Source: Lepidodermella squamata (taxonomy: Eukaryota > Animalia > Gastrotricha). Taken from it: a stretch of 64,000 nucleotides of DNA. The DNA lies in the NCBI GenBank assembly GCA_047495785.1, contig JBLDXI010000055.1, positions 1,240,001-1,304,000 of the forward strand. The letters are read 5' to 3'. Each line of letters opens with the position of its first letter. Positions within the stretch are counted from its first letter, which is position 1. The notes below the pieces were generated by a model. The model saw only the letters and a list, made by a program, of their open reading frames with translations. It ran no database searches and was not told where the DNA came from. Of the stretch, positions 44,769 to 58,228 are shown in pieces. Both the position numbers and the translations under genes were made by a program.

Positions 44769-46171
44769 TCACACTACTGAGCGGCGATGATGATTTCCTG
44801 GCCGGTGTTTTCGATGACCTGTTCGACTTGGCTGATATCGCGGCACCAAGCCATCAAACGTTGCTGCATCTTCGCCAGTTGGTTCTTGTCCAAAACGCGA
44901 GGTTGGACCCAGCTGATGTGAACGAGCTACAAACAAAGGAAGCCAGTTTTTGAATTGCAAGCGAAAATTATTAGGGCATCATACCTGAGAGACTTCGTCG
45001 ATGCAGCCGCGAATGAGACCCAGCGACATGGCTTGCATAACGAGAGCTTCGACTTCGAAAAGTTCAACACCGGTTTTTGAGGCGATGTCGGCGAAAGGAA
45101 TGTGGCGATTTTCCCCAGGCCTCGAGAAAGCCAGTTCGACGAGACACATCAGGCGCATTTTCTTGAGCAGTTCTTGGCCACGACCGGCCAGATCAGGCTG
45201 GCTACGCCACGTTTTCCCCATAGCTGGAAACAAATAAATTAAAGATTACTCAAGATGCGTTACCAGAGGATCGGTAGAGGAATTTAGTCGATTAGAAAGA
45301 TGCTTTACCATTGAATTGATTCATGTCTCCAGCATTGAATACGCCAATGAGATCGACGAGCCACGACTTGTCGGTTGGGCGGAGCGATTCCAAAATCTGG
45401 TGTTGCAGCAGCTCGCCAAAGTTGTAGACGTTTTTGCCGAGGAGCGCTGCTAGGCAGAGGTCAAAGGCACGCTCGCGCTGCGACTCGATCGGGACAGTCG
45501 TAATATCGGTGCAGCCGAGAAAACGCAGGGAGTGCCGGTAGTACTGGCTGAAGTCGCCAATCAGCTTGTAGTAAAGCGAAGACAGTTCGTAAAAACGGCT
45601 GTGAACTTTCGTAACAGATGACAGTTCATCAATGTGCTTTTCAGCCTCAGCAATAGCCGCCTTAAAAAAGGTAAATTTAGGCTTATGAGACCTTATTCGA
45701 TCATTTTTTCCCTCTTACCTTTGCTCCAGCAACATCGCTAGTTTTCAAACAGATCATTCCGGCCGAAGTGATGCAGAGGACAACAGCTTCATGGTTAGCC
45801 TTTACCTTGTCTTTGGTTTTACCTAGCAGATCAAGGGCTTCGTCCTTTGCTGATAAATAGAATTTTTTCAATAAGCATTTTATAACCGTTTCGATCAACT
45901 CACAATCAATCTGTTGAACGACCATATCGGCAATTTCAGCCAGAGACAACGGGTTGATACGGTGTTCAAAATCGACGATGAACTGGGAATAGGTCTGCAC
46001 CAAGCGCTTGTTGGTCTGAAAGTGGGGGTGGCGCAAAAATTGCAGCATCTCAAGGGTCAGTTGATGCCACAACTTTTTAGCGAGCAACTGCTCGATAATA
46101 GCCCAACGCTCGACCACATCACGGGGCGCCCCAACTTGCTGCTCCGCCAAAAACGCTCCAACATTGACCAT
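44769..46171 (-). CDS. PSMD13: 26S proteasome non-ATPase regulatory subunit 13 (Rpn9), multi-exon
   Basis: KKLWHQLT, FEHRINPLSLAEI, YNFGELLQHQIL, KMRLMCLVELAF, EVEALVMQAMSLGLIRGCIDEV, VHISWVQPRVL (PCI domain). Confidence 0.95.
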
Positions 46172-46550: not shown

Positions 46551-47149
46551 TTAAACTTTTTCTGAGGCGTTAGCCGGAACCATTGGTTCTTTCTCCTCGA
46601 CATCGGGCGAATCTCCGGCTTTGTCAGAGCTACTCGTCAACTCCTGAGATCCTTTTTTCTCGTTCGACAGTCCATATTTGTGCTGTTTGTAATAGGTCCA
46701 GCTGAGCCATGTTAACATACCTGTAATTGAAATGCATTAGGATTAACAGATTTTACCGTCGGCAACTAACCGGTCCATTTCAGAGTCATGGATGACCAGA
46801 CGGACCCCATCCAAAGGCTATTTCCGTAGACGATAATGCCTTCCTTGTGGATAATTGCCAATACCACGTAAGTTATAAAAGCAGCGAGGGCAATGACCGA
46901 AGTCACAATGCCCAGAATAAATAGGCCGAACAAAGCTCCAGTTCGGGTTTTCCAATAATTTTTGAACTCGAGAACATTGAGCGCGAGGACAAATGCGGCG
47001 AAGACTCCACTCGCGATTCCCCAGTAGGCGGCATGGTAAGAATGGAAATGCAATAGGAAGGCGAAAAATACCGAAATGCCGGTACAAACACCCGACACGC
47101 TCATTCCGATACGGAAGTACATTTTTGCTTTAGGCGACATGCAACCCAT
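46551..47149 (-). CDS. SLC48A1: Heme transporter HRG-1/SLC48A1 family, paralog B; exons 47149-46771, 46720-46551
   Basis: TGISVFFAF, AAYWGIASGVFAAFVL, NYWKT, AAFITYVVLAIIH, SVWSSMTLKWT; clearly paralogous to 43100-43673. Confidence 0.88.
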
Positions 47150-49454: not shown

Positions 49455-50296
49455 GTACAGAGCTTTATAGAATACAATAGCGTATTTAGGAGGCTACTAT
49501 GAAATATAAACTTGGCCCAGGATTACAGCTTTGCGATACATATATTAACTGACGTTTTCAGCTTGCAAATGAAAGGGTAGGTTTGGCTTCAGCCTCAGAG
49601 CCTCGGATAAGTTTTAGTTTAACGAAATGCGAGGAAGTAGCGTACGTAAGAGGTAAGAGCTTCCTTTGGAGTCCCGCAACTCATTCAAAACTCAGGAGTA
49701 GTCGCTGAAAAATTATGAACGTTTTCGAAAACAAAATCGTTTTCACCTATATTAAAATTCTGGACAACAGGTTTTCATCATCGTTAACATTCCCAGCGGA
49801 TAAAAGTGTTCGCAGTATAAAATCTTAAAAAGTTTTAGTTTTGAGGGTTTTTTGAAAAAACGCGCGCTTCACATGTCCCCGCCCGCCTCGCTGTCTGCGC
49901 CTCTCTGTCCGCGCCCTGTCTCCAGTTGTGCGCCAGCTGCCAGCTGCCTACTTTGGACTGTGGAAGCGTTTACATTCACATACCGTTTGAAACATAATAG
50001 TTTTGTTGTCCTGTCCGAACTAGTTTGACGAGAGTCGTTGCCAACAATCAACAATCATCTTCATAATTCTGTCTTATTGGCGTTCGGTGTCACATTTTGT
50101 TGATGTCGACTGTACTAATTCAGTCGCTAATTCTTGTCTGTCCGACCCATTTTTGATTCAAGATGCTACTGCGCGCAGCATGGCTGCCGTGTACTTAATT
50201 TAAACGCTTATAAACTGATTTATCGCCTTCAAGCTTGAATTCATAAACTGTACAATTTCATTCTTTAGTCCCCTTTTCAATAAATTTCGCGATAAA

Positions 50297-50923
50297 ATGG
50301 CCGGCGATCTTGGCGTTAAAGCTCTTGCTATCATATTGCCCAATGCAAGCTCTTTTTTGGGATGCCCTTGTGCTGGTGGCAGCTCTTGGTCTGGATGTTG
50401 CAAGGTAATCCCCGATATCTTATTTCATATTCCCAAGTTGTTGTTTTTATGCTAGGCTACTGAGCAAAGCACACCTTGCCCGTGCCCGATGCCGAAGGCT
50501 GCATGGCATACCGCACTTTTTGCCGCGAATTCATCAACGGGCTACGCCAGCTACTTGATCTGGAAGGAACTGCGTGGTTTTGGTCATCACGAACACACCG
50601 CTTTTGCTGCGTTCTTGCTGTCTGGTGCTGTTCATCCAAGTTTACTGAGAAATGCTGACAAATGGGGATATGGCCCAGCCATCGTCAATTCCGTGCTTGG
50701 TGTCGGCTTGGCTTTTTGCGTGACGAAATTGTTCCTTAAAGTCGACAGCCGTGCTGGACACTTTTTCATTCCTGGTATTTTATTCAAATACATAATCTTT
50801 ATTACTTGACCAATGTTTGTTTTTCAAGGGGTTATCCTGGCTCTGCTCCGTGCTGGGTGCACTATTTCCTGCGCTGGTGGAAAGTGCGGAAAAGAAGGCG
50901 CCTGCTGCCCAGCGAAAAAATGA
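50297..50923 (+). CDS. Divergent cysteine-rich TspO/MBR (translocator protein)-like membrane protein, 173 aa; exons 50297-50404, 50456-50774, 50829-50923
   Basis: GYASYLIWKELRGF (human TSPO GYGSYLVWKELGGF as recalled), ILPNASSFLG (TM1), FLKVDSRAGHFFIP (TM4-TM5 loop); TSPO-like length. Confidence 0.75.
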
Positions 50924-51904
50924 GAGTGCGGTTTTCTTGAGAAGTAGACTTTAACTCGACATCAATTCATTTGCTTGCTACTTAACGGTTTATTGCTACA
51001 GTTGACCGAGGTCTCGCCACCTTAAAACCTTCCACCAATACTTAATCTAGATGAACCGCTCTTTCAGATGAGTTCAATTGTTATCCATGTATCACTTTGG
51101 CCACGCCAACTAAGTAATGAATAGATCTTAATCATGATAAATTTTATTCTCACCTAAGTGTATGGTCTAAGTGTATTTTCAGCTCAAATCCTGTTTCAAT
51201 AATTGTTTACCATTTCTGGTTTAATCAGATTAAATAAAATAACGACTTCATTCAGATTCGCTTCGTTTTGTTGATTTTTTCATGTGGGCAATTCCAGAAT
51301 TGCTGAAGTATCTAACGGCTTCAATTATATATCAACGCAGCTGGTCAATAATTAATTCAACGCGGAGGTGATGGCTGAAAACAACATTGACTGACTGTAA
51401 AAATGTCGCATGCTTGATCATCCGGAGCTTTTACAGAGCGGAATAACACTGCTGAGCACTCAAGTATATATGCGTTTTTTCACCTGCAATTAGGGTTTGC
51501 GTAAATGAGGGTTAAAATCGATATCACTGTTTTTTGTGGTCGATCACGCATCGCGCGCACTGCAGCACAACGTGGCGCATTGCATTACCTTCCGATGTGA
51601 ATTGATTTCATTATTAATGTTACCTAAGGGATGTGGGATATATTAAAGCAGGGGTTTAGACAAGCATAAATATATGCAATGCGTGTTGCCTTTTCTGGCT
51701 GACTTCGTGGCGCTTATTTCATTATTTTAAGCGATATTTTCTAGTGAAATTAGTGTATGAGAGAATGAGGCATTCTAGCAGGTGCACTTTATGCATCGTA
51801 ATTCTTCGCATAAGCTAAGTACGCCTGAAAGAGCCCAACTGAGGCGGCAAAATATCGACCCATCCTACAAAGACATACTTACAAATTTTATTTTGTTAGA
51901 CAAT

Positions 51905-54900
51905 ATGCAAGTTGTGTTTCTACAGCTTGGACTATTGCTATGGAAATGCTGGGTCACAGAATCTCGTCGACGGGTAATATACATTCAAGACTTTGAATAG
52001 AGATATACATTTTAGCAATTGATTGTTTTGCAGATGCTAGCAGTTTTTCAGATAATTGCTCCAATCACCATGTTTCTTATTGTTGTCTCAGTTCGAAATT
52101 CTTTGAATTTAAGGAAAGCCCAGCACGAATGTAAGGAAAGGAAAGATTGTTAGCAGAAATATAACATATTATTTTTAGGTCATTTCGGAGCGAAACCGCT
52201 GATATCTGCAGGAGTTGTCCCTTTTCTTCAAGGTCTAGTTTGCCATTCTAACAACACCTGTCTCGCGTCTAAGACGCTTGGAGAAGATACTCGATATCCA
52301 TTCAATAAAACTTTGTGAGTATAATATCTAGTGTTATGTTGGAATATTTTTTTAGCAACACCGTCTTCTTCATTTAGAATTCCGTCTTTCGATCAATTAT
52401 CATCTGCTCCTAATCCGGTGACGTCGAACCCGACAGAAACAACCTCTGCATCGGGTAACAACGAGCTTTCGCGATTGATATCTTCAGTTTCACAATTTTG
52501 GGATGCTCTTTGCGACGAGCCATTCCCTCTGACAGAAAATGGCGCTGGCATATCTGCTTCCTCTGCTGTAAACAACGGTGTTAATGCATTAAACACAAGA
52601 GGTTGTTTGAGCCGGCTTTCTGCAACGACAAACAGCGCTCGCATTAATGCCAGCCGCATGGCCACTCCTAGTTGGCTAGCAAATATTACTAATCTACAAA
52701 GTCAAGCGGATATGCAGGCAATGCTCCAATGTCAGCGGTTCTATTGTGTCTTGCAAGGCTTCAGCCCGTTATGGATAACCCTAACAAGGCTGCTAATGGG
52801 GCGCATCGTATATTATCCAAATACAACGGTGATAAATAACCTAATGGCGAGGGTTGAAAGCGGCCTCAACTTTGCTAGTGTTGCCCAGGACGCCGTTCAA
52901 CGCGCCAACGCATTTTCCTCTGTGTTTAGTGGCAGGCGCCGAAATCGGGGCCGCCCATCACCCCAAGATTCCCGCATCGCAGAGCTGCTCGGCTGCCTGG
53001 CAACTGAGGATAACCGTATTGAAGGGGTCGATTCGGTGGAAAAATTGATGAATCGCTCGATGAGGTATGCATCGCGGCGACTGCTGACTGCTGCGGTTCA
53101 TTTTTATGATGTTGACAAATTGACCGGGGATGAGTTGCCAAGGGTGGTTCGTTATGGACTTAGATTCGATCCGTTGCATTTAGACCGCACGACAGCTGTA
53201 AAAGATAGGCCATTCAATACACGAGTCCGGCGTAGTCCGACTGGTGAAATGTCCTACTTTTTGACCGGCTTCATTTATCTACAAGACATAATTGATAAGA
53301 CAATAATCAAAATGCAGGCCGAACAGCTGGGAAAGGATTCTCCGCAGGATCCTAACCCATTCACACAGATAGGAACTATCATGCAACAGTTTCCGTATCC
53401 GTGCTACTTGGACGACATTTTCATGCAAGTATTAGCAAGCCAGCTGACGCTCTACATCGTTTTGGGTTGGATTCTGCTCGCTGCCATCATCGTCAAGTCT
53501 GTTGTTCTAGAAAAGCAAGAAAAGCTACGCGAGGTTTCCAGAATAATGGGAATTTCGCCAGGGCTTCATTTTCTGTCGTGGTTCATCTTTTGGAGCTGTT
53601 TCATGTTTCTCACGATTTTGATTTTTCTCGCCATTGTGAAATTTGGCAATATTTTCGAGCAAGCCTCAGCTGCAGTGATTTTGGTTTTCATGATTTGCTA
53701 CGCATTCGCAATGATCTCTTTCTGCTTCTTCATATCAGCATTTTTTAATCGCGCCAACGTTGCAGCAGTTGTCAGCGCCCTCGCGTATTTCCTTACCTAC
53801 GTCGCTTTTGGTGGGATCACAAACGCTAGCGGAGATTCGCTCGATCTACAAAAAATGGTCTTGGGCTCGGTGTTGCCTAACGTTGCGTTGGGGTTCGGCT
53901 GGCAAGTAGTAGCTAATTACGAACTGACAACTGAGGGCGTGAACTTCGATAACTTCATTACGCCTGTAAGTGACGATCCCTCCGATCAATTCACTATGGG
54001 CCACGCGATGGGAATCTTGATATTTGATGCAATTTTTTACTACTTCCTCGCCTGGTACGTCGACTACGTTTTCCCCGGCGAGTATGGGGTTCCTATGCCG
54101 TGGTACTTCGTTCTTCAACCTTCGTTTTGGTGCAGCGGGGTGGATTGCAGCAGTTATTATCAATCGCTATGTGGAGGGGATGCTAAAGGCCGATACAGTC
54201 GCGGCGTCGATAATGTGTCTTTCGTTAGCGGTGGCAAGTTGTTGGTGGAGAAAGAACCGAGTCATTTGAAAGTCGGCTGTGAGCTTAGATCAGTTTATAA
54301 AATGTACGACTTCGGAATTTTCCAAAGGATCAAGCAGTTCATGCGCAATCGAAGTAGCAAGAAGCAGAAAGTTGGCCCTTCCCGGGCCGCCGTTGATCAT
54401 TTGTCCTTGAATATGTACGAGAATCAGATTACGGCTCTATTGGGACATAACGGCGCAGGAAAGACTACAACCATGTCCATCATCACTGGCTTGATCCCAG
54501 CGACTTACGGCAGTGTGTATGTTTACGGTCATAATGTTGCGCGAGAATTGTCTACTGTTCGTCGAAAAATGGGCTTTTGCCCCCAGTTCAATGTCCTTTA
54601 TGAGAATCTCACCGTTGCCGAACATCTTTGGTTCTTCGCTCGAATTCGTGGCCAAAGCAGCTCGCGTGTAAAGAAAGACATTGCGGAAATGCTTATAGAT
54701 ACTGATTTGACTGCGAAAGCGAATGAATACTCAAAAGTTCTTTCTGGCGGAATGCGGCGGCGTCTGTCTATAGCCATAGCATTTATTGGAGATGCGAAGT
54801 GCGTGATTCTTGACGAGCCAACCGCTGGAGTCGATCCATACGCTCGAAGATCCATTTGGGATTTATTGGGGAAGTTTCGAATGGGAAGAACCACTATTCT

Positions 54901-57900
54901 GTCAACGCACCACATGGACGAGGCGGAGATTTTGGCAGATCGTATCGCTATTATTTCACAGGGGAAACTCCAAACATGTGGCTCTCCAATTTTTCTGAAA
55001 CAAGCCCATGGAGAAGGATACCGGCTGACCATGGTTCTCGAAAATGAACAAGGTTCTGGAGAAGACAGTGCTATCACTAATTTCTTGAGCAATCACCTGC
55101 CGCCTGATCATTATCGAGTGATCGGAAAGTCAGGGCCTGAAGTCCGGTTATCTCTGGCTTATGAGGGGCTGGAAAAGTTTCCCAGCCTTTTTGAATCTTT
55201 GGACGCCGCCAAAAGCGAGCTAAAAATATCAAGCTACGGCTTGTCCGACTCCAGTCTTGACGATATCTTCATAAAAATAACTAGAGAGTCTGACGAGGGA
55301 TACGGTGGCATCAAGTCTATTTCAACAGTCGACACGATGAACAGTGCGAAAGATGTGAAATATCAGAATCTGACCGGGATTCGGTTAATTTCACTCCAGT
55401 TTTACGGGCTTCTTGTAAAAAGGTTTCATCGTATGAGGCGAAGCTGGAAAGGATTCATTGTTGAGCTGTTGCTGCCTGTCGTCTTCGTTCTTATCGGCGT
55501 TACTATTATCAAGTTGGCCGAGTATAAACCGGGAAACCCCCCACCACTCGAGCTAGTCCCTTGGCTGCTAGCACCTGGCTTTCAATCAGCACGGGATCGA
55601 CGGTTGTATACTTTCTTTAGCTCGGTAAATAATTCAGGAAACGCAAATTTACGTCGAATTAGCGACGCCGTGGCGAAAGCTTCCACCATGTCAGAGTACG
55701 CGGGTACCCGGTGCATGAGCCCAGCTTCAAATTATTCAATCGCAAACTACCCCTGCTCATCTGACACGTCTTGGAACGAGTCAACATTGCTGACAACTGA
55801 TCGATATCGAATGCGCGATTGCGTTTGCACCGAGGAAGGCGTGCAACGATGCACCATTTCAAGTTCTAATTATTCAATGCCCACTTACCGATATCTTCGC
55901 ACGACGGACGACGTGCTAAATCTGACCAATTTTGATGTTTCAGCATATATCCTGAGTAAAAAACTCAATTTTTAAAATCTAATTTGGCTATTAATTTTTA
56001 TCGTTTCAGATCAATTCAAATCAATGCGCCACAACTTTTACGGCGGTTGGAGTTTCTTCGTTCAGAGTCCTCCGTTTGGTGTTTTGCTGTCCGATTATCT
56101 CAATAATGTCAATGACGATGCTTATGCTCCAAGGCTTTTCTCGCCAGGATCAATTGCCGTTTGGTTCAACAACAAGGGCTGGATGTCTAGTGTCGCTTAT
56201 AATAACTTCATTAACAACATGCTGCTACGTTTGGCAGTTTCAGACGATGTTTCCGCGCCAAATTCAACCTACGGCATCGTAACTTTCAACCATCCCTTGA
56301 ATTACAGTCGAGAGCAGTTTAACGAGAGACTTCAATCAGCTGCTTTCATCGACGTTATGCTTGCCATTTTGCTGATACTTGCCCTCAGCTTCGTCCCAGC
56401 TTCGTTTGTCATGTTTTTAATCGAAGACCGAGTTTCCGAGTCAAAGCACGTTCAAATGGTAAGTGGTCTGCGACCGGCAGTATATTGGTTGGCAAATTTC
56501 ACATGGGACTGCATAAATTACCTAATTCCAGTTGGTGCTTGCGCTGTGATTTTTGTCGCCTTCAATGTTGAGGCTTACACTAACAAAGCTTCGATTGGAG
56601 CCCTGATACTGCTCTTTATCTTATACGGATTGGCTGTTGCACCGATGCTGTATCCAACCAGTCTTTTCTTCGCCACTCCGTCCACTGCTTTCGTCATTCT
56701 GGCATGCATGAGTTTGTTCCTTGGCTCAGGAACGACGATCGCAACTTGGTTTTTGGACCTTTTATACTTGAGGGAAAACGACAGCAGTCTCCAACATGTA
56801 AATGAAGTATTGCAAGTTGTTTTCTTCATTTTTCCGCAATATTGCTTCGGCCGCGGCCTGCTAAATCTTGCCATTTCCTATCGAACTGCCCAGGCTCGTT
56901 CCTACTACACTGGTGCGGAATCCACAGCAGACTTGCATAAGCCTTGGTCTTGGGACACCTGCGGTAAATTCATGGTTGCTCTTGTTCTGCATAACTTGGG
57001 TTGGATGACAGTCAACATTCTATTGGCTTACTACCTGCCTTTACTGATAAATATTTCGTCGATTTACCGCGCAAAGTTGAAGAGCCGAATAATGAATATT
57101 TGGAAAAAGCGCCGCGTCGCTCTAGTTGGAAATAGCCAACTTTCACTGCAAAGTGAAACCGATGTTGATGTGGCCAAAGAACAGGAGCTTATCTTGAGTG
57201 GTGAATACGAACCTGATGGCTATACTTTGATTGTCAAAAAATTGACAAAAACGTTTTTGAGATGGAATGGCCCGATTAATGCGGTTGATAACCTATCTTT
57301 CGGAGTGGCGAACGGTTCTTGCTTTGGTTTACTGGGCATCAATGGAGCTGGAAAGTCTACAACCTTTAACATGCTTACTGGACTGCTTCCGCCAACTAGT
57401 GGAAGTGCACAGGTTAGGAATTACGATATCATTTCCTCGCGAAATCAGGCCAACAAGCACATCGGCTACTGCCCTCAATACGACTGCATTACACCGCTGC
57501 TTTCCGGTCGAGAAAATCTCGAGTTTTTCGCTCGCATTCGTGGAGTTCCGCCTAGCTATGTAAAACAAGTGGCAGAACACAACATCCAACGATTGGACCT
57601 GGCCAAATACTCTGAAAAAATCGCAGGCGCTTATTCAGGCGGAAACAAGCGCAAATTGTCGATGGCTATCGCTCTCACAGGTGAGCCGTTATTAGTGCTT
57701 CTCGACGAGCCGACTGCTGGGGTGGACCCCAAAGCCAGGCGGCACCTGCGGAAAGCTATCTCTGAGCTCCTACAAAACGGGCAGTCGGTGATCTTGACGA
57801 CTCATTCCATGGACGAATGTGAAGCGCTGTGCACTAGAATTGCAATTATGGTCAACGGACAGTTTCAGTGCCTCGGCAGTCCACAGCATTTAAAAGCCCG

Positions 57901-58228
57901 ATTCGGCGAGGGTTACATGCTGACTCTTCGTTTCATTCCCGGCGGTAACCAAAATCAAATGCATGCAGTGGCTGAGAGAGAACTTAAGACACGATTCAAG
58001 GACGTTATTTTAAAAGAATCTCACGACAATGTGGCAGTAATAGCTATGTGGTCAACCGGTATCGAACCAATTAAATTGGGTGCTCTATTCGGCTTTCTGA
58101 CGGACTTGGAGCTAATGGCGTCATTTCACATTACCGACTTTTCAATCATGCAGTCCTCGTTGGATTCAGTTTTCATAACTTTTGCCAAAGGACAACAAGA
58201 AGCGCCACCAGCACAGCGCGAATCATGA
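51905..58228 (+). CDS. Full-size ABC transporter subfamily A (ABCA1/2/4-like), ~2000 aa, ~5 exons
   Basis: QLGLLLWKCW N-terminus, CHFGAKPLISAGVVPFLQGLVC, QQFPYPCY, NBD1 GHNGAGKTT/LSGGMRRRL/ILDEPT, NBD2 GINGAGKST/YSGGNKRKL/LLDEPT, LGSPQHLKARFG, SLDSVFITFA. Confidence 0.96.

Follow-up and report, generated by a model that had tools for sequence, protein, structure and literature searches.

A divergent TSPO-family gene of the gastrotrich Lepidodermella squamata encodes a Cys/His-rich membrane protein with a putative heme-binding pocket

The gene located at positions 50,297 to 50,923 of the window (the whole 64,000-nucleotide stretch of Lepidodermella squamata DNA analysed here; Table 1) is almost certainly a functional, conserved and divergent member of the TSPO family and, as judged by its sequence relationships, is part of a tiny, divergent branch of the TSPO/MBR proteins. 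We consider it plausible, if slightly short of an even chance, that the rebuilt TSPO pocket of this protein constitutes a putative iron-ligating heme-binding site, which would be used for heme handling in a heme-dependent animal.

Table 1. Window coordinates of the TSPO-like gene, its motifs and its neighbours
Feature	Positions	Strand	Basis or remark
5'UTR	50231..50296	+	X1 contig start at 50231; no ATG before 50297
Exon 1, coding part (36 aa): TM1 and first half of Cys-rich loop 1	50297..50404	+	sequence translation
Cys cluster C23, C25, C34, C35 in exon 1	50363-50401	+	C23 invariant in the subfamily
Intron 1, 51 nt, GT..AG, phase 0	50405..50455	+	sequence and X1 read-through
Exon 2, 106 codons and 1 base: remaining loop 1, TM2, TM3, TM4, start of TM5	50456..50774	+	
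Cys-Pro-Met-Pro, C46-P49, loop 1	50483..50494	+	invariant as C-P-[MIV]-P
Trp53-His54, start of TM2	50504..50509	+	Rhodobacter TSPO F46 and position 47
His-His-Glu-His, H80-H83, TM2-TM3 turn	50585..50596	+	HEH invariant in the subfamily
His96-Pro97, TM3	50633..50638	+	replaces Trp of N-x-x-W-x-P (Rhodobacter W87-T88)
Intron 2, 54 nt, GT..AG, phase 1	50775..50828	+	skipped in X2/X3; X1 ends read into exon 3
Exon 3, coding part: split Gly codon, 30 aa, TGA stop at 50921-50923; end of TM5 (Leu at the Trp position, no CRAC Tyr) and basic Cys-rich tail	50829..50923	+	
Tail Cys C153, C157, C162, C168, C169	50858-50908	+	exon 3 translation
3'UTR	50924..51218	+	RNA-like coverage stops within 51118-51218
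HRG (haem-responsive gene / SLC48A1-type heme transporter) exon, intact 127-aa frame	46766..47149	-	PF16954
PSD13 N-terminal-repeat exon (26S proteasome regulatory subunit, Rpn9-like), housekeeping	45701-46171	-	
Very long open frames with ABC2_membrane_3 and ABC_tran domains	52331-55975 and 56024-58228	+	

The list of open reading frames contains only the middle exon of the gene (as ORF 50489-50809) and so hides both Cys clusters, as the initial annotation had pointed out; the three-exon, 173-aa product which it proposed is borne out by the transcripts of X1, X2 and X3, in which both junctions are seen. Translated exon by exon, the product comprises 36 + 106 + 1 (the split Gly) + 30 residues, and all residue numbers given below refer to it and were obtained by summing exon lengths. 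It contains 12 Cys (4, 3 and 5 by exon), four Cys-Pro dipeptides and four Trp; a recount returned the annotated figures for Cys and Cys-Pro, as well as the His-His-Glu-His of the TM2-TM3 loop and the Cys-rich C-terminus. The transcript spans approximately 50231 to 51218, with its first ATG at 50297. The contigs of run X1 are restricted to 50231-51218 (with zero coverage in 49603-50208 and past 51219), and because of this confinement and of the empty flanks the run was treated as RNA. Its depth amounts to hundreds to thousands over the TSPO-like gene and to 5-12 over the upstream neighbour, contig depth being unfit for ranking genes by expression; the gene is likely well expressed. Junction 1 is documented by an X1 contig (50231-50405) that continues with 19 letters of the start of exon 2, and junction 2 by two X1 contigs that stop at 50775 and then continue with the start of exon 3, as well as by X2 and X3 (each representing another organism or strain, 90-99% alike), whose contigs skip 50774-50828 with GT..AG ends. 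A loose end of X1 at 50614, considered as a further splice, was rejected as an inverted-join artefact (it is the reverse complement of 50480-50493). Two stop codons, TGA and TAA, occur within X1 (TAA making up about two thirds by depth), and linked to the stop variant are two changes in the 3'UTR, G>A at 50926 and the loss of 6 nt at 50940; these variants (50922-50945) are allelic or strain variation.

The inventory of coding differences in X2 and X3 comprises five synonymous third-position changes, one Asp>Glu replacement and one TGA>TAA change (n=7, three more differences close to the contig end lying outside this itemised set), as against 16 substitutions and one indel in the 143 nt of the relative's 3'UTR that were covered (about 12% different). 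This near-confinement of coding changes to third positions, set against the divergence of the 3'UTR, therefore indicates that the gene is real and under purifying selection, its Cys-rich tail included.

Scanned singly against Pfam TspO_MBR (PF03073, cut-off 24), exon 2 scored 22.9 bits (E 7.6e-5), and exons 1 and 3 gave no match to this profile; exon 2 moreover matches mouse TSPO (2MGY) in the PDB with an E of 0.018. As a word-index search with exon 2 returned no match, an exhaustive search was needed, which among 1.84 billion representatives recovered a single cluster, P0001 (190 aa, 51% identity, E 5e-24). Two more members, P0003 (184 aa) and P0004 (191 aa), emerged when word searches were begun with P0001 and with the family alignment; across 5.8 billion sequences such searches (a profile word search included) found no subfamily members beyond P0001 and these two. 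The subfamily as known consists of four sequences (this gene, P0001, P0003 and P0004) that are 51-65% identical overall. The three orthologs are full-length and metatranscriptomic, and lie on uninterrupted contigs of about 1 kb in JGI samples; these contigs are therefore taken to be mRNAs. Against TspO_MBR, P0001 and P0002 score 33.5 bits (above the same cut-off) over profile positions 2-131 of 145, and for P0003 and P0004 a PF03073 annotation was precomputed; the kinship with TSPO claimed earlier is thus upheld by the orthologs, in addition to the sub-threshold score of exon 2 and its match to the mouse protein. A protein-atlas look-up returned generic TSPO clusters only (score 0.81). The resemblance of loop 1 of P0004 to complement-control (Sushi) domains (phmmer E 0.2-0.6) was judged to be a spurious match of Cys patterns. 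It is furthermore observed that the mRNA contigs of two different orthologs (L014:1-57 and L016:1-47) have TGACTAAG in common just inside their 5' ends, and that this segment looks like a spliced leader. When the longer copy was made into a 23-nt pattern ending in an added GT splice donor, this pattern proved absent from the present genome, and the animals from which the orthologs derive would therefore possess a different leader or belong to another lineage. The nematode leader SL1 is likewise missing from the present genome.

Exon 2 aligns without gaps to TM2-TM5 of the orthologs, and exons 1 and 3 align to the full-length orthologs with their Cys conserved. The possibility that the gene is mis-modelled or decaying, and that its Cys-rich exons lie outside any translated product, appears exceedingly remote: the middle exon does have an ATG of its own and by itself falls just below the Pfam threshold, but this reading is opposed by the alignment just described, by the removal of both introns in transcripts of three organisms or strains, by the position of the transcript's first AUG (50297) and by the synonymous nature of the substitutions.

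The subfamily is predicted to adopt the five-TM TSPO fold, judging by the modelled orthologs P0004 and P0001. The AF2 model of P0004 (built with the family and eight canonical paralogs from the same genome) has a mean pLDDT of 77.5 and five long helices, and its best 15 PDB matches are all TSPO (TM up to 0.78). The model of P0001, built from the family alignment alone (pLDDT 58.5), shows the same helices and the same kind of top 15 matches; since the family-only model gives the same result, the fold is considered to be independent of the canonical seeding. For both models the structure matches have probabilities of 0.93-1.00 (1.00 in 26 of the 30) and TM values up to 0.77-0.78, so that the comparison with the TSPO 5-TM fold proposed in the initial annotation came out in favour of TSPO. 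Loop 1 and the tail are of low confidence in both models (loop pLDDT below 60).

The distribution of Lys and Arg among the loops is uneven, with seven on the side of loop 1, L3-4 and the tail and one or two on the opposite side in each of the four members. Since under the positive-inside rule the K/R-rich side is cytosolic, the Cys clusters, H54 and H96 are predicted to face the cytosol, and the C-terminus of mammalian TSPO is oriented in the same way. With loop 1 and the Cys-rich tail predicted to be cytosolic, their thiols would be expected to be reduced and available; HEH lies on the membrane face opposite to the Cys clusters. We regard it as very unlikely that the protein has a reversed topology within the secretory pathway, with loop 1 and the tail lumenal or outside and structural disulfides stiffening the lid over the pocket. 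In favour of such an arrangement are the close grouping of several Cys, the ER/Golgi location of plant TSPO and the fact that TSPO orientation and location differ between lineages (review PMC8243069), but by its charge distribution the Cys side would be cytosolic in each of the four members, the N-terminus has no signal peptide-like part beyond TM1, and the Cys totals (12, 14, 14 and 16 per member), together with the unaligned extra Cys of the tail, argue against fixed disulfide partners.

A search for canonical TSPO paralogs, suggested in the initial annotation, recovered about 12 such genes in the genome: about 11 in tandem at C12:471700-480400 (L013, L004) and one further gene at C60:378535-378897 (L007). 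All score 77-145 bits against TspO_MBR, the TSPO-like locus being a lone and far weaker match. Queried with exons 2 and 3, the genome yielded the locus itself and no closer paralogs, and the TSPO-like gene is single-copy; its product is 16-22% identical to the canonical paralogs of the same genome. In an alignment of eight canonical paralogs, W44, W50 and W135 (Rhodobacter numbering) are kept in all eight and W87 in six, and one paralog (L013:2970-3308) has a His at Rhodobacter position 47. Several canonical paralogs possess a phase-2 intron right before the W-x-P-P motif. Homology of this intron position with that of the TSPO-like gene was considered and rejected, the one being in phase 2 inside Pro and the other in phase 0 after Cys-Cys-Lys (near, not identical).

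The Cys/His pattern of the subfamily is not one of chance, since columns are identical in four members that are only 51-65% identical. Five Cys and four His columns are shared by all four; the invariant columns are C23, C46, W53, H54, H81, H83, H96, C153, C157 and one further tail Cys, of which C23 closes TM1, while C153 and C157 lie where TM5 ends. The conservation of Cys in relatives, on which the initial annotation had placed weight, is thereby established for these five columns; some other Cys are kept in three of the four members, and the tail Cys beyond the first three vary in position. The surrounding helices are conserved as well: the TM2 stretch G-Y-A-S-Y-L/M-I/V-W/Y-K-D/E-L is the same in all members bar four conservative alternatives, and TM5 reads P-G-x-x-L-A-L-x-R throughout, with Ala as the fourth residue in the three orthologs and Ile in this protein.

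We mapped the subfamily onto the Rhodobacter pocket by a MAFFT alignment with the canonical paralogs and by an independent hhalign profile-profile alignment, which agree, and counting backwards without gaps from G-x-A-S-Y-L leads to an identical mapping. In all four members the pocket tryptophans are replaced (W44 by A/G, W50 by L, W87 by H96, W135 by L), F46 corresponds to W53, position 47 to H54 and T88 to Pro. The Leu residues proposed earlier by eye for the TM2 and TM5 Trp positions are hence recovered by both methods. The more general statement that the family tryptophans are lost holds for the pocket and fails for the protein as a whole, which keeps four Trp, among them the subfamily-invariant W53. 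The CRAC cholesterol motif at the end of TM5 is a mammalian feature; as annotated earlier, its Tyr is absent here, no Tyr being present between the TM5 Leu run and the tail (segment A-L-L-R-A-G-C-T-I-S-C). The annotated neofunctionalisation of a TSPO is well supported, the gene being expressed, spliced as proposed, single-copy and under purifying selection, and its conserved orthologs having the TSPO fold with the hallmark tryptophans replaced.

In Rhodobacter TSPO the heme is wedged between F46, W50 and W87 with loop 1 as a lid, T88 is water-bridged to the heme iron, and W50 and W135 also shape the pocket (PMC10077581). The His that Arabidopsis TSPO requires for heme binding corresponds, according to the same source, to Rhodobacter position 47, and in PMC2742820 and PMC10377097 Cys-Pro motifs are described as heme or redox sites of other proteins. 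Since the alignment maps them to Rhodobacter 47 and W87, H54 and H96 would occupy heme-contacting positions; a His at the equivalent of position 47, as in the plant protein, is present in all four members by MAFFT as well as hhalign. Loop 1 moreover has the makings of a heme-regulatory motif (a Cys-Pro with a hydrophobic residue after it, in a flexible, low-pLDDT loop), and three further CP dipeptides are found in the protein. We propose that an ancestral, Trp-lined porphyrin pocket operating by pi-stacking may have been converted into an iron-ligating heme site. In such a site, His54 (at the position of the plant heme-binding His) would be a candidate ligand, His96 would stand in place of W87 and beside the position which, in the Rhodobacter heme complex, is linked to the iron by a water, and C46 of the lid loop (in its Cys-Pro-hydrophobic context) could serve as a thiolate ligand or as a thiol/disulfide switch. 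The protein might then hold heme at the membrane (to buffer it, chaperone it or hand it over), possibly downstream of the adjoining HRG heme importer and in an animal that seemingly lacks heme synthesis. Several observations speak against this proposal: the replacement of W50 and W135 by Leu could equally mean that porphyrin binding was lost, the variable tail Cys would suit lipidation or a loose association with metal more than a defined site, loop 1 and the tail are modelled with low confidence, and the invariant HEH, predicted to lie on the opposite membrane face, is left unexplained.

The Cys clusters of loop 1 and tail could alternatively form, together with His54 and His96 of the same membrane face, a membrane-anchored thiolate/imidazole site for Zn, Cu, Cd or an Fe-S cluster, a reading that we deem unlikely. 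The protein would in that case buffer or detoxify metals, or be one of the redox-active Fe-S proteins found in organelle membranes. This reading would accommodate the CxC, CC and Cx3C spacings, the 12-16 Cys per member, the Gly/Pro/Cys-rich tails (conserved in composition and less so in exact spacing), the predicted disorder of the loops (as in proteins that fold on metal binding) and the predicted cytosolic location of the Cys side. It gives no account, however, of why the replacements fall exactly on porphyrin-pocket positions 46, 47, 50, 87 and 135, nor of Cys-Pro-hydrophobic as the invariant loop motif, and the nearby gene is that of HRG, no metal-handling gene being present in the vicinity. 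Metallothioneins are small and soluble, have no membrane helices, and consist of Cys to about a fifth or more of their residues; the present protein, with 173 aa, five helices and 12 Cys (7%, far below metallothioneins), resembles them in Cys spacing only. Heme is favoured over metal as the putative ligand.

A similarly low probability is assigned by us to a ligand-dead pseudo-TSPO, with a decayed pocket and with S-palmitoylation at its juxtamembrane, cytosolic Cys; anchored by lipid, the protein would serve as a scaffold, or else would partner or regulate the approximately 12 canonical paralogs. The usual setting of S-acylation is a Cys next to a TM end in a Lys-rich cytosolic tail, and the Cys runs beside the TM ends and the Lys-rich (predicted cytosolic) tail of this protein conform to it; the loss of the ligand-binding tryptophans, the variable positions of the tail Cys and the many canonical TSPO genes available as partners point in the same direction. 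Decay, however, leaves unexplained the four invariant His (two of them in the pocket) and the invariant CP-x-P, and is at variance with the strong purifying selection on the pocket helices; palmitoylation and heme binding are, besides, not mutually exclusive.

Returning to the putative heme site, the genomic surroundings are of interest. No PF16954 match other than the HRG exon was obtained from the 121-Mb genome, and this exon is situated 3.1 kb upstream of the TSPO-like gene. For one pre-named family such a proximity has a chance of order 1e-4; here it was noticed post hoc. The two genes are separated by at least one other, and in animals gene order rarely implies function. The minus strand upstream of the TSPO-like gene carries, besides the HRG exon, the proteasome-subunit-like exon and CH-domain-like exons, and the two ABC frames just downstream are probably a single full transporter gene of the ABCA type or else two such genes in tandem. 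In a six-frame profile search of the whole genome (121.2 Mb, 151 contigs) no match was obtained to ferrochelatase, UROD, ALAD, CPOX or HMBS; the citrate synthase control yielded 4 matches in the same search, and the method also found the 22-bit TSPO exon. The published genome of Lepidodermella squamata is described as having 122 Mb, 157 contigs, 43% GC and a BUSCO completeness of about 80%, and TSPO is not mentioned in that paper (PMC11660948). An accidental absence of all five heme-synthesis families is unlikely even at this completeness, and Lepidodermella squamata may therefore be a heme auxotroph. Nematodes are heme auxotrophs (according to PMC3596385), and the literature searched contained no report of heme auxotrophy in a free-living gastrotrich. 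Among the ligands and roles named in the initial annotation, heme gains from H54, H96, the Cys-Pro motif of the lid loop, the HRG gene and the lack of synthesis genes, and metal is possible; nothing speaks for sulfide or for the role of a sensor as such, the protein having no output domain.

More comprehensively, one might envisage a previously undescribed TSPO lineage with a Cys/His-rebuilt pocket, in which the porphyrin pocket became a His/Cys-ligated heme site and the protein a dedicated membrane heme acceptor or chaperone, genomically paired with the sole HRG importer, in a phylum (Gastrotricha) that independently lost heme biosynthesis; as a whole, this scenario seems to us doubtful, though not far-fetched. 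The function of TSPO has long been disputed between cholesterol import, porphyrin/heme handling and stress signalling. The present case is one of a retained TSPO fold with pocket residues swapped for classic iron ligands, in a seemingly heme-importing animal and beside its only HRG. If heme binding were true, the case for porphyrin/heme handling as what the TSPO family has conserved at its core would be strengthened and the protein would represent a new type of eukaryotic membrane heme-binding protein, and if the pocket has indeed become a heme site, the gene would be a natural experiment linking the TSPO fold directly to heme trafficking. Should heme auxotrophy be confirmed, a free-living spiralian with 12 canonical TSPO genes would join the nematodes, ticks and sea lice.

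Compared with known systems, the protein shares with canonical TSPO/MBR (mouse 2MGY, Bacillus cereus 4RYI, Rhodobacter 4UC1/8E7X) the predicted five-helix bundle, a length of about 170 aa, the loop-1 lid, the G-x-A-S-Y-L-I-W-K-E-L of TM2 and the P at the start of TM5; the N of TM3 is kept in the three orthologs and replaced by Gly in this protein. Unlike in the canonical proteins, loop 1 of the subfamily is Cys-rich and has C-P-x-P instead of W-x-P-P, the protein additionally carries an HEH motif and a basic tail rich in Cys, and the CRAC Tyr is absent. Metallothioneins and Cys-string or palmitoylated tails have in common with it the CxC, CC and Cx3C spacing and the Gly/Lys-rich Cys runs, but they are either soluble or peripheral and contain far more Cys, whereas here two short Cys appendages are attached to what is predicted to be an integral membrane protein. 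As in Arabidopsis TSPO (which binds heme via His91, according to PMC10077581 and PMC7033594), a pocket His stands, by alignment alone, at the equivalent of Rhodobacter position 47; unlike the plant protein, the subfamily has no N-terminal extension of the plant type and possesses a second pocket His and Cys clusters, and plants retain the family tryptophans. With the heme-regulatory motifs of heme oxygenase-2, which PMC2742820 describes as forming a thiol/disulfide switch, it shares a hydrophobic residue after Cys-Pro, the flexibility of the segment concerned and the presence of several CP per protein; in contrast to heme oxygenase-2, the motif (known here from sequence) would be situated in a membrane protein of porphyrin-binding fold, within its lid loop, and not in a soluble regulatory tail.
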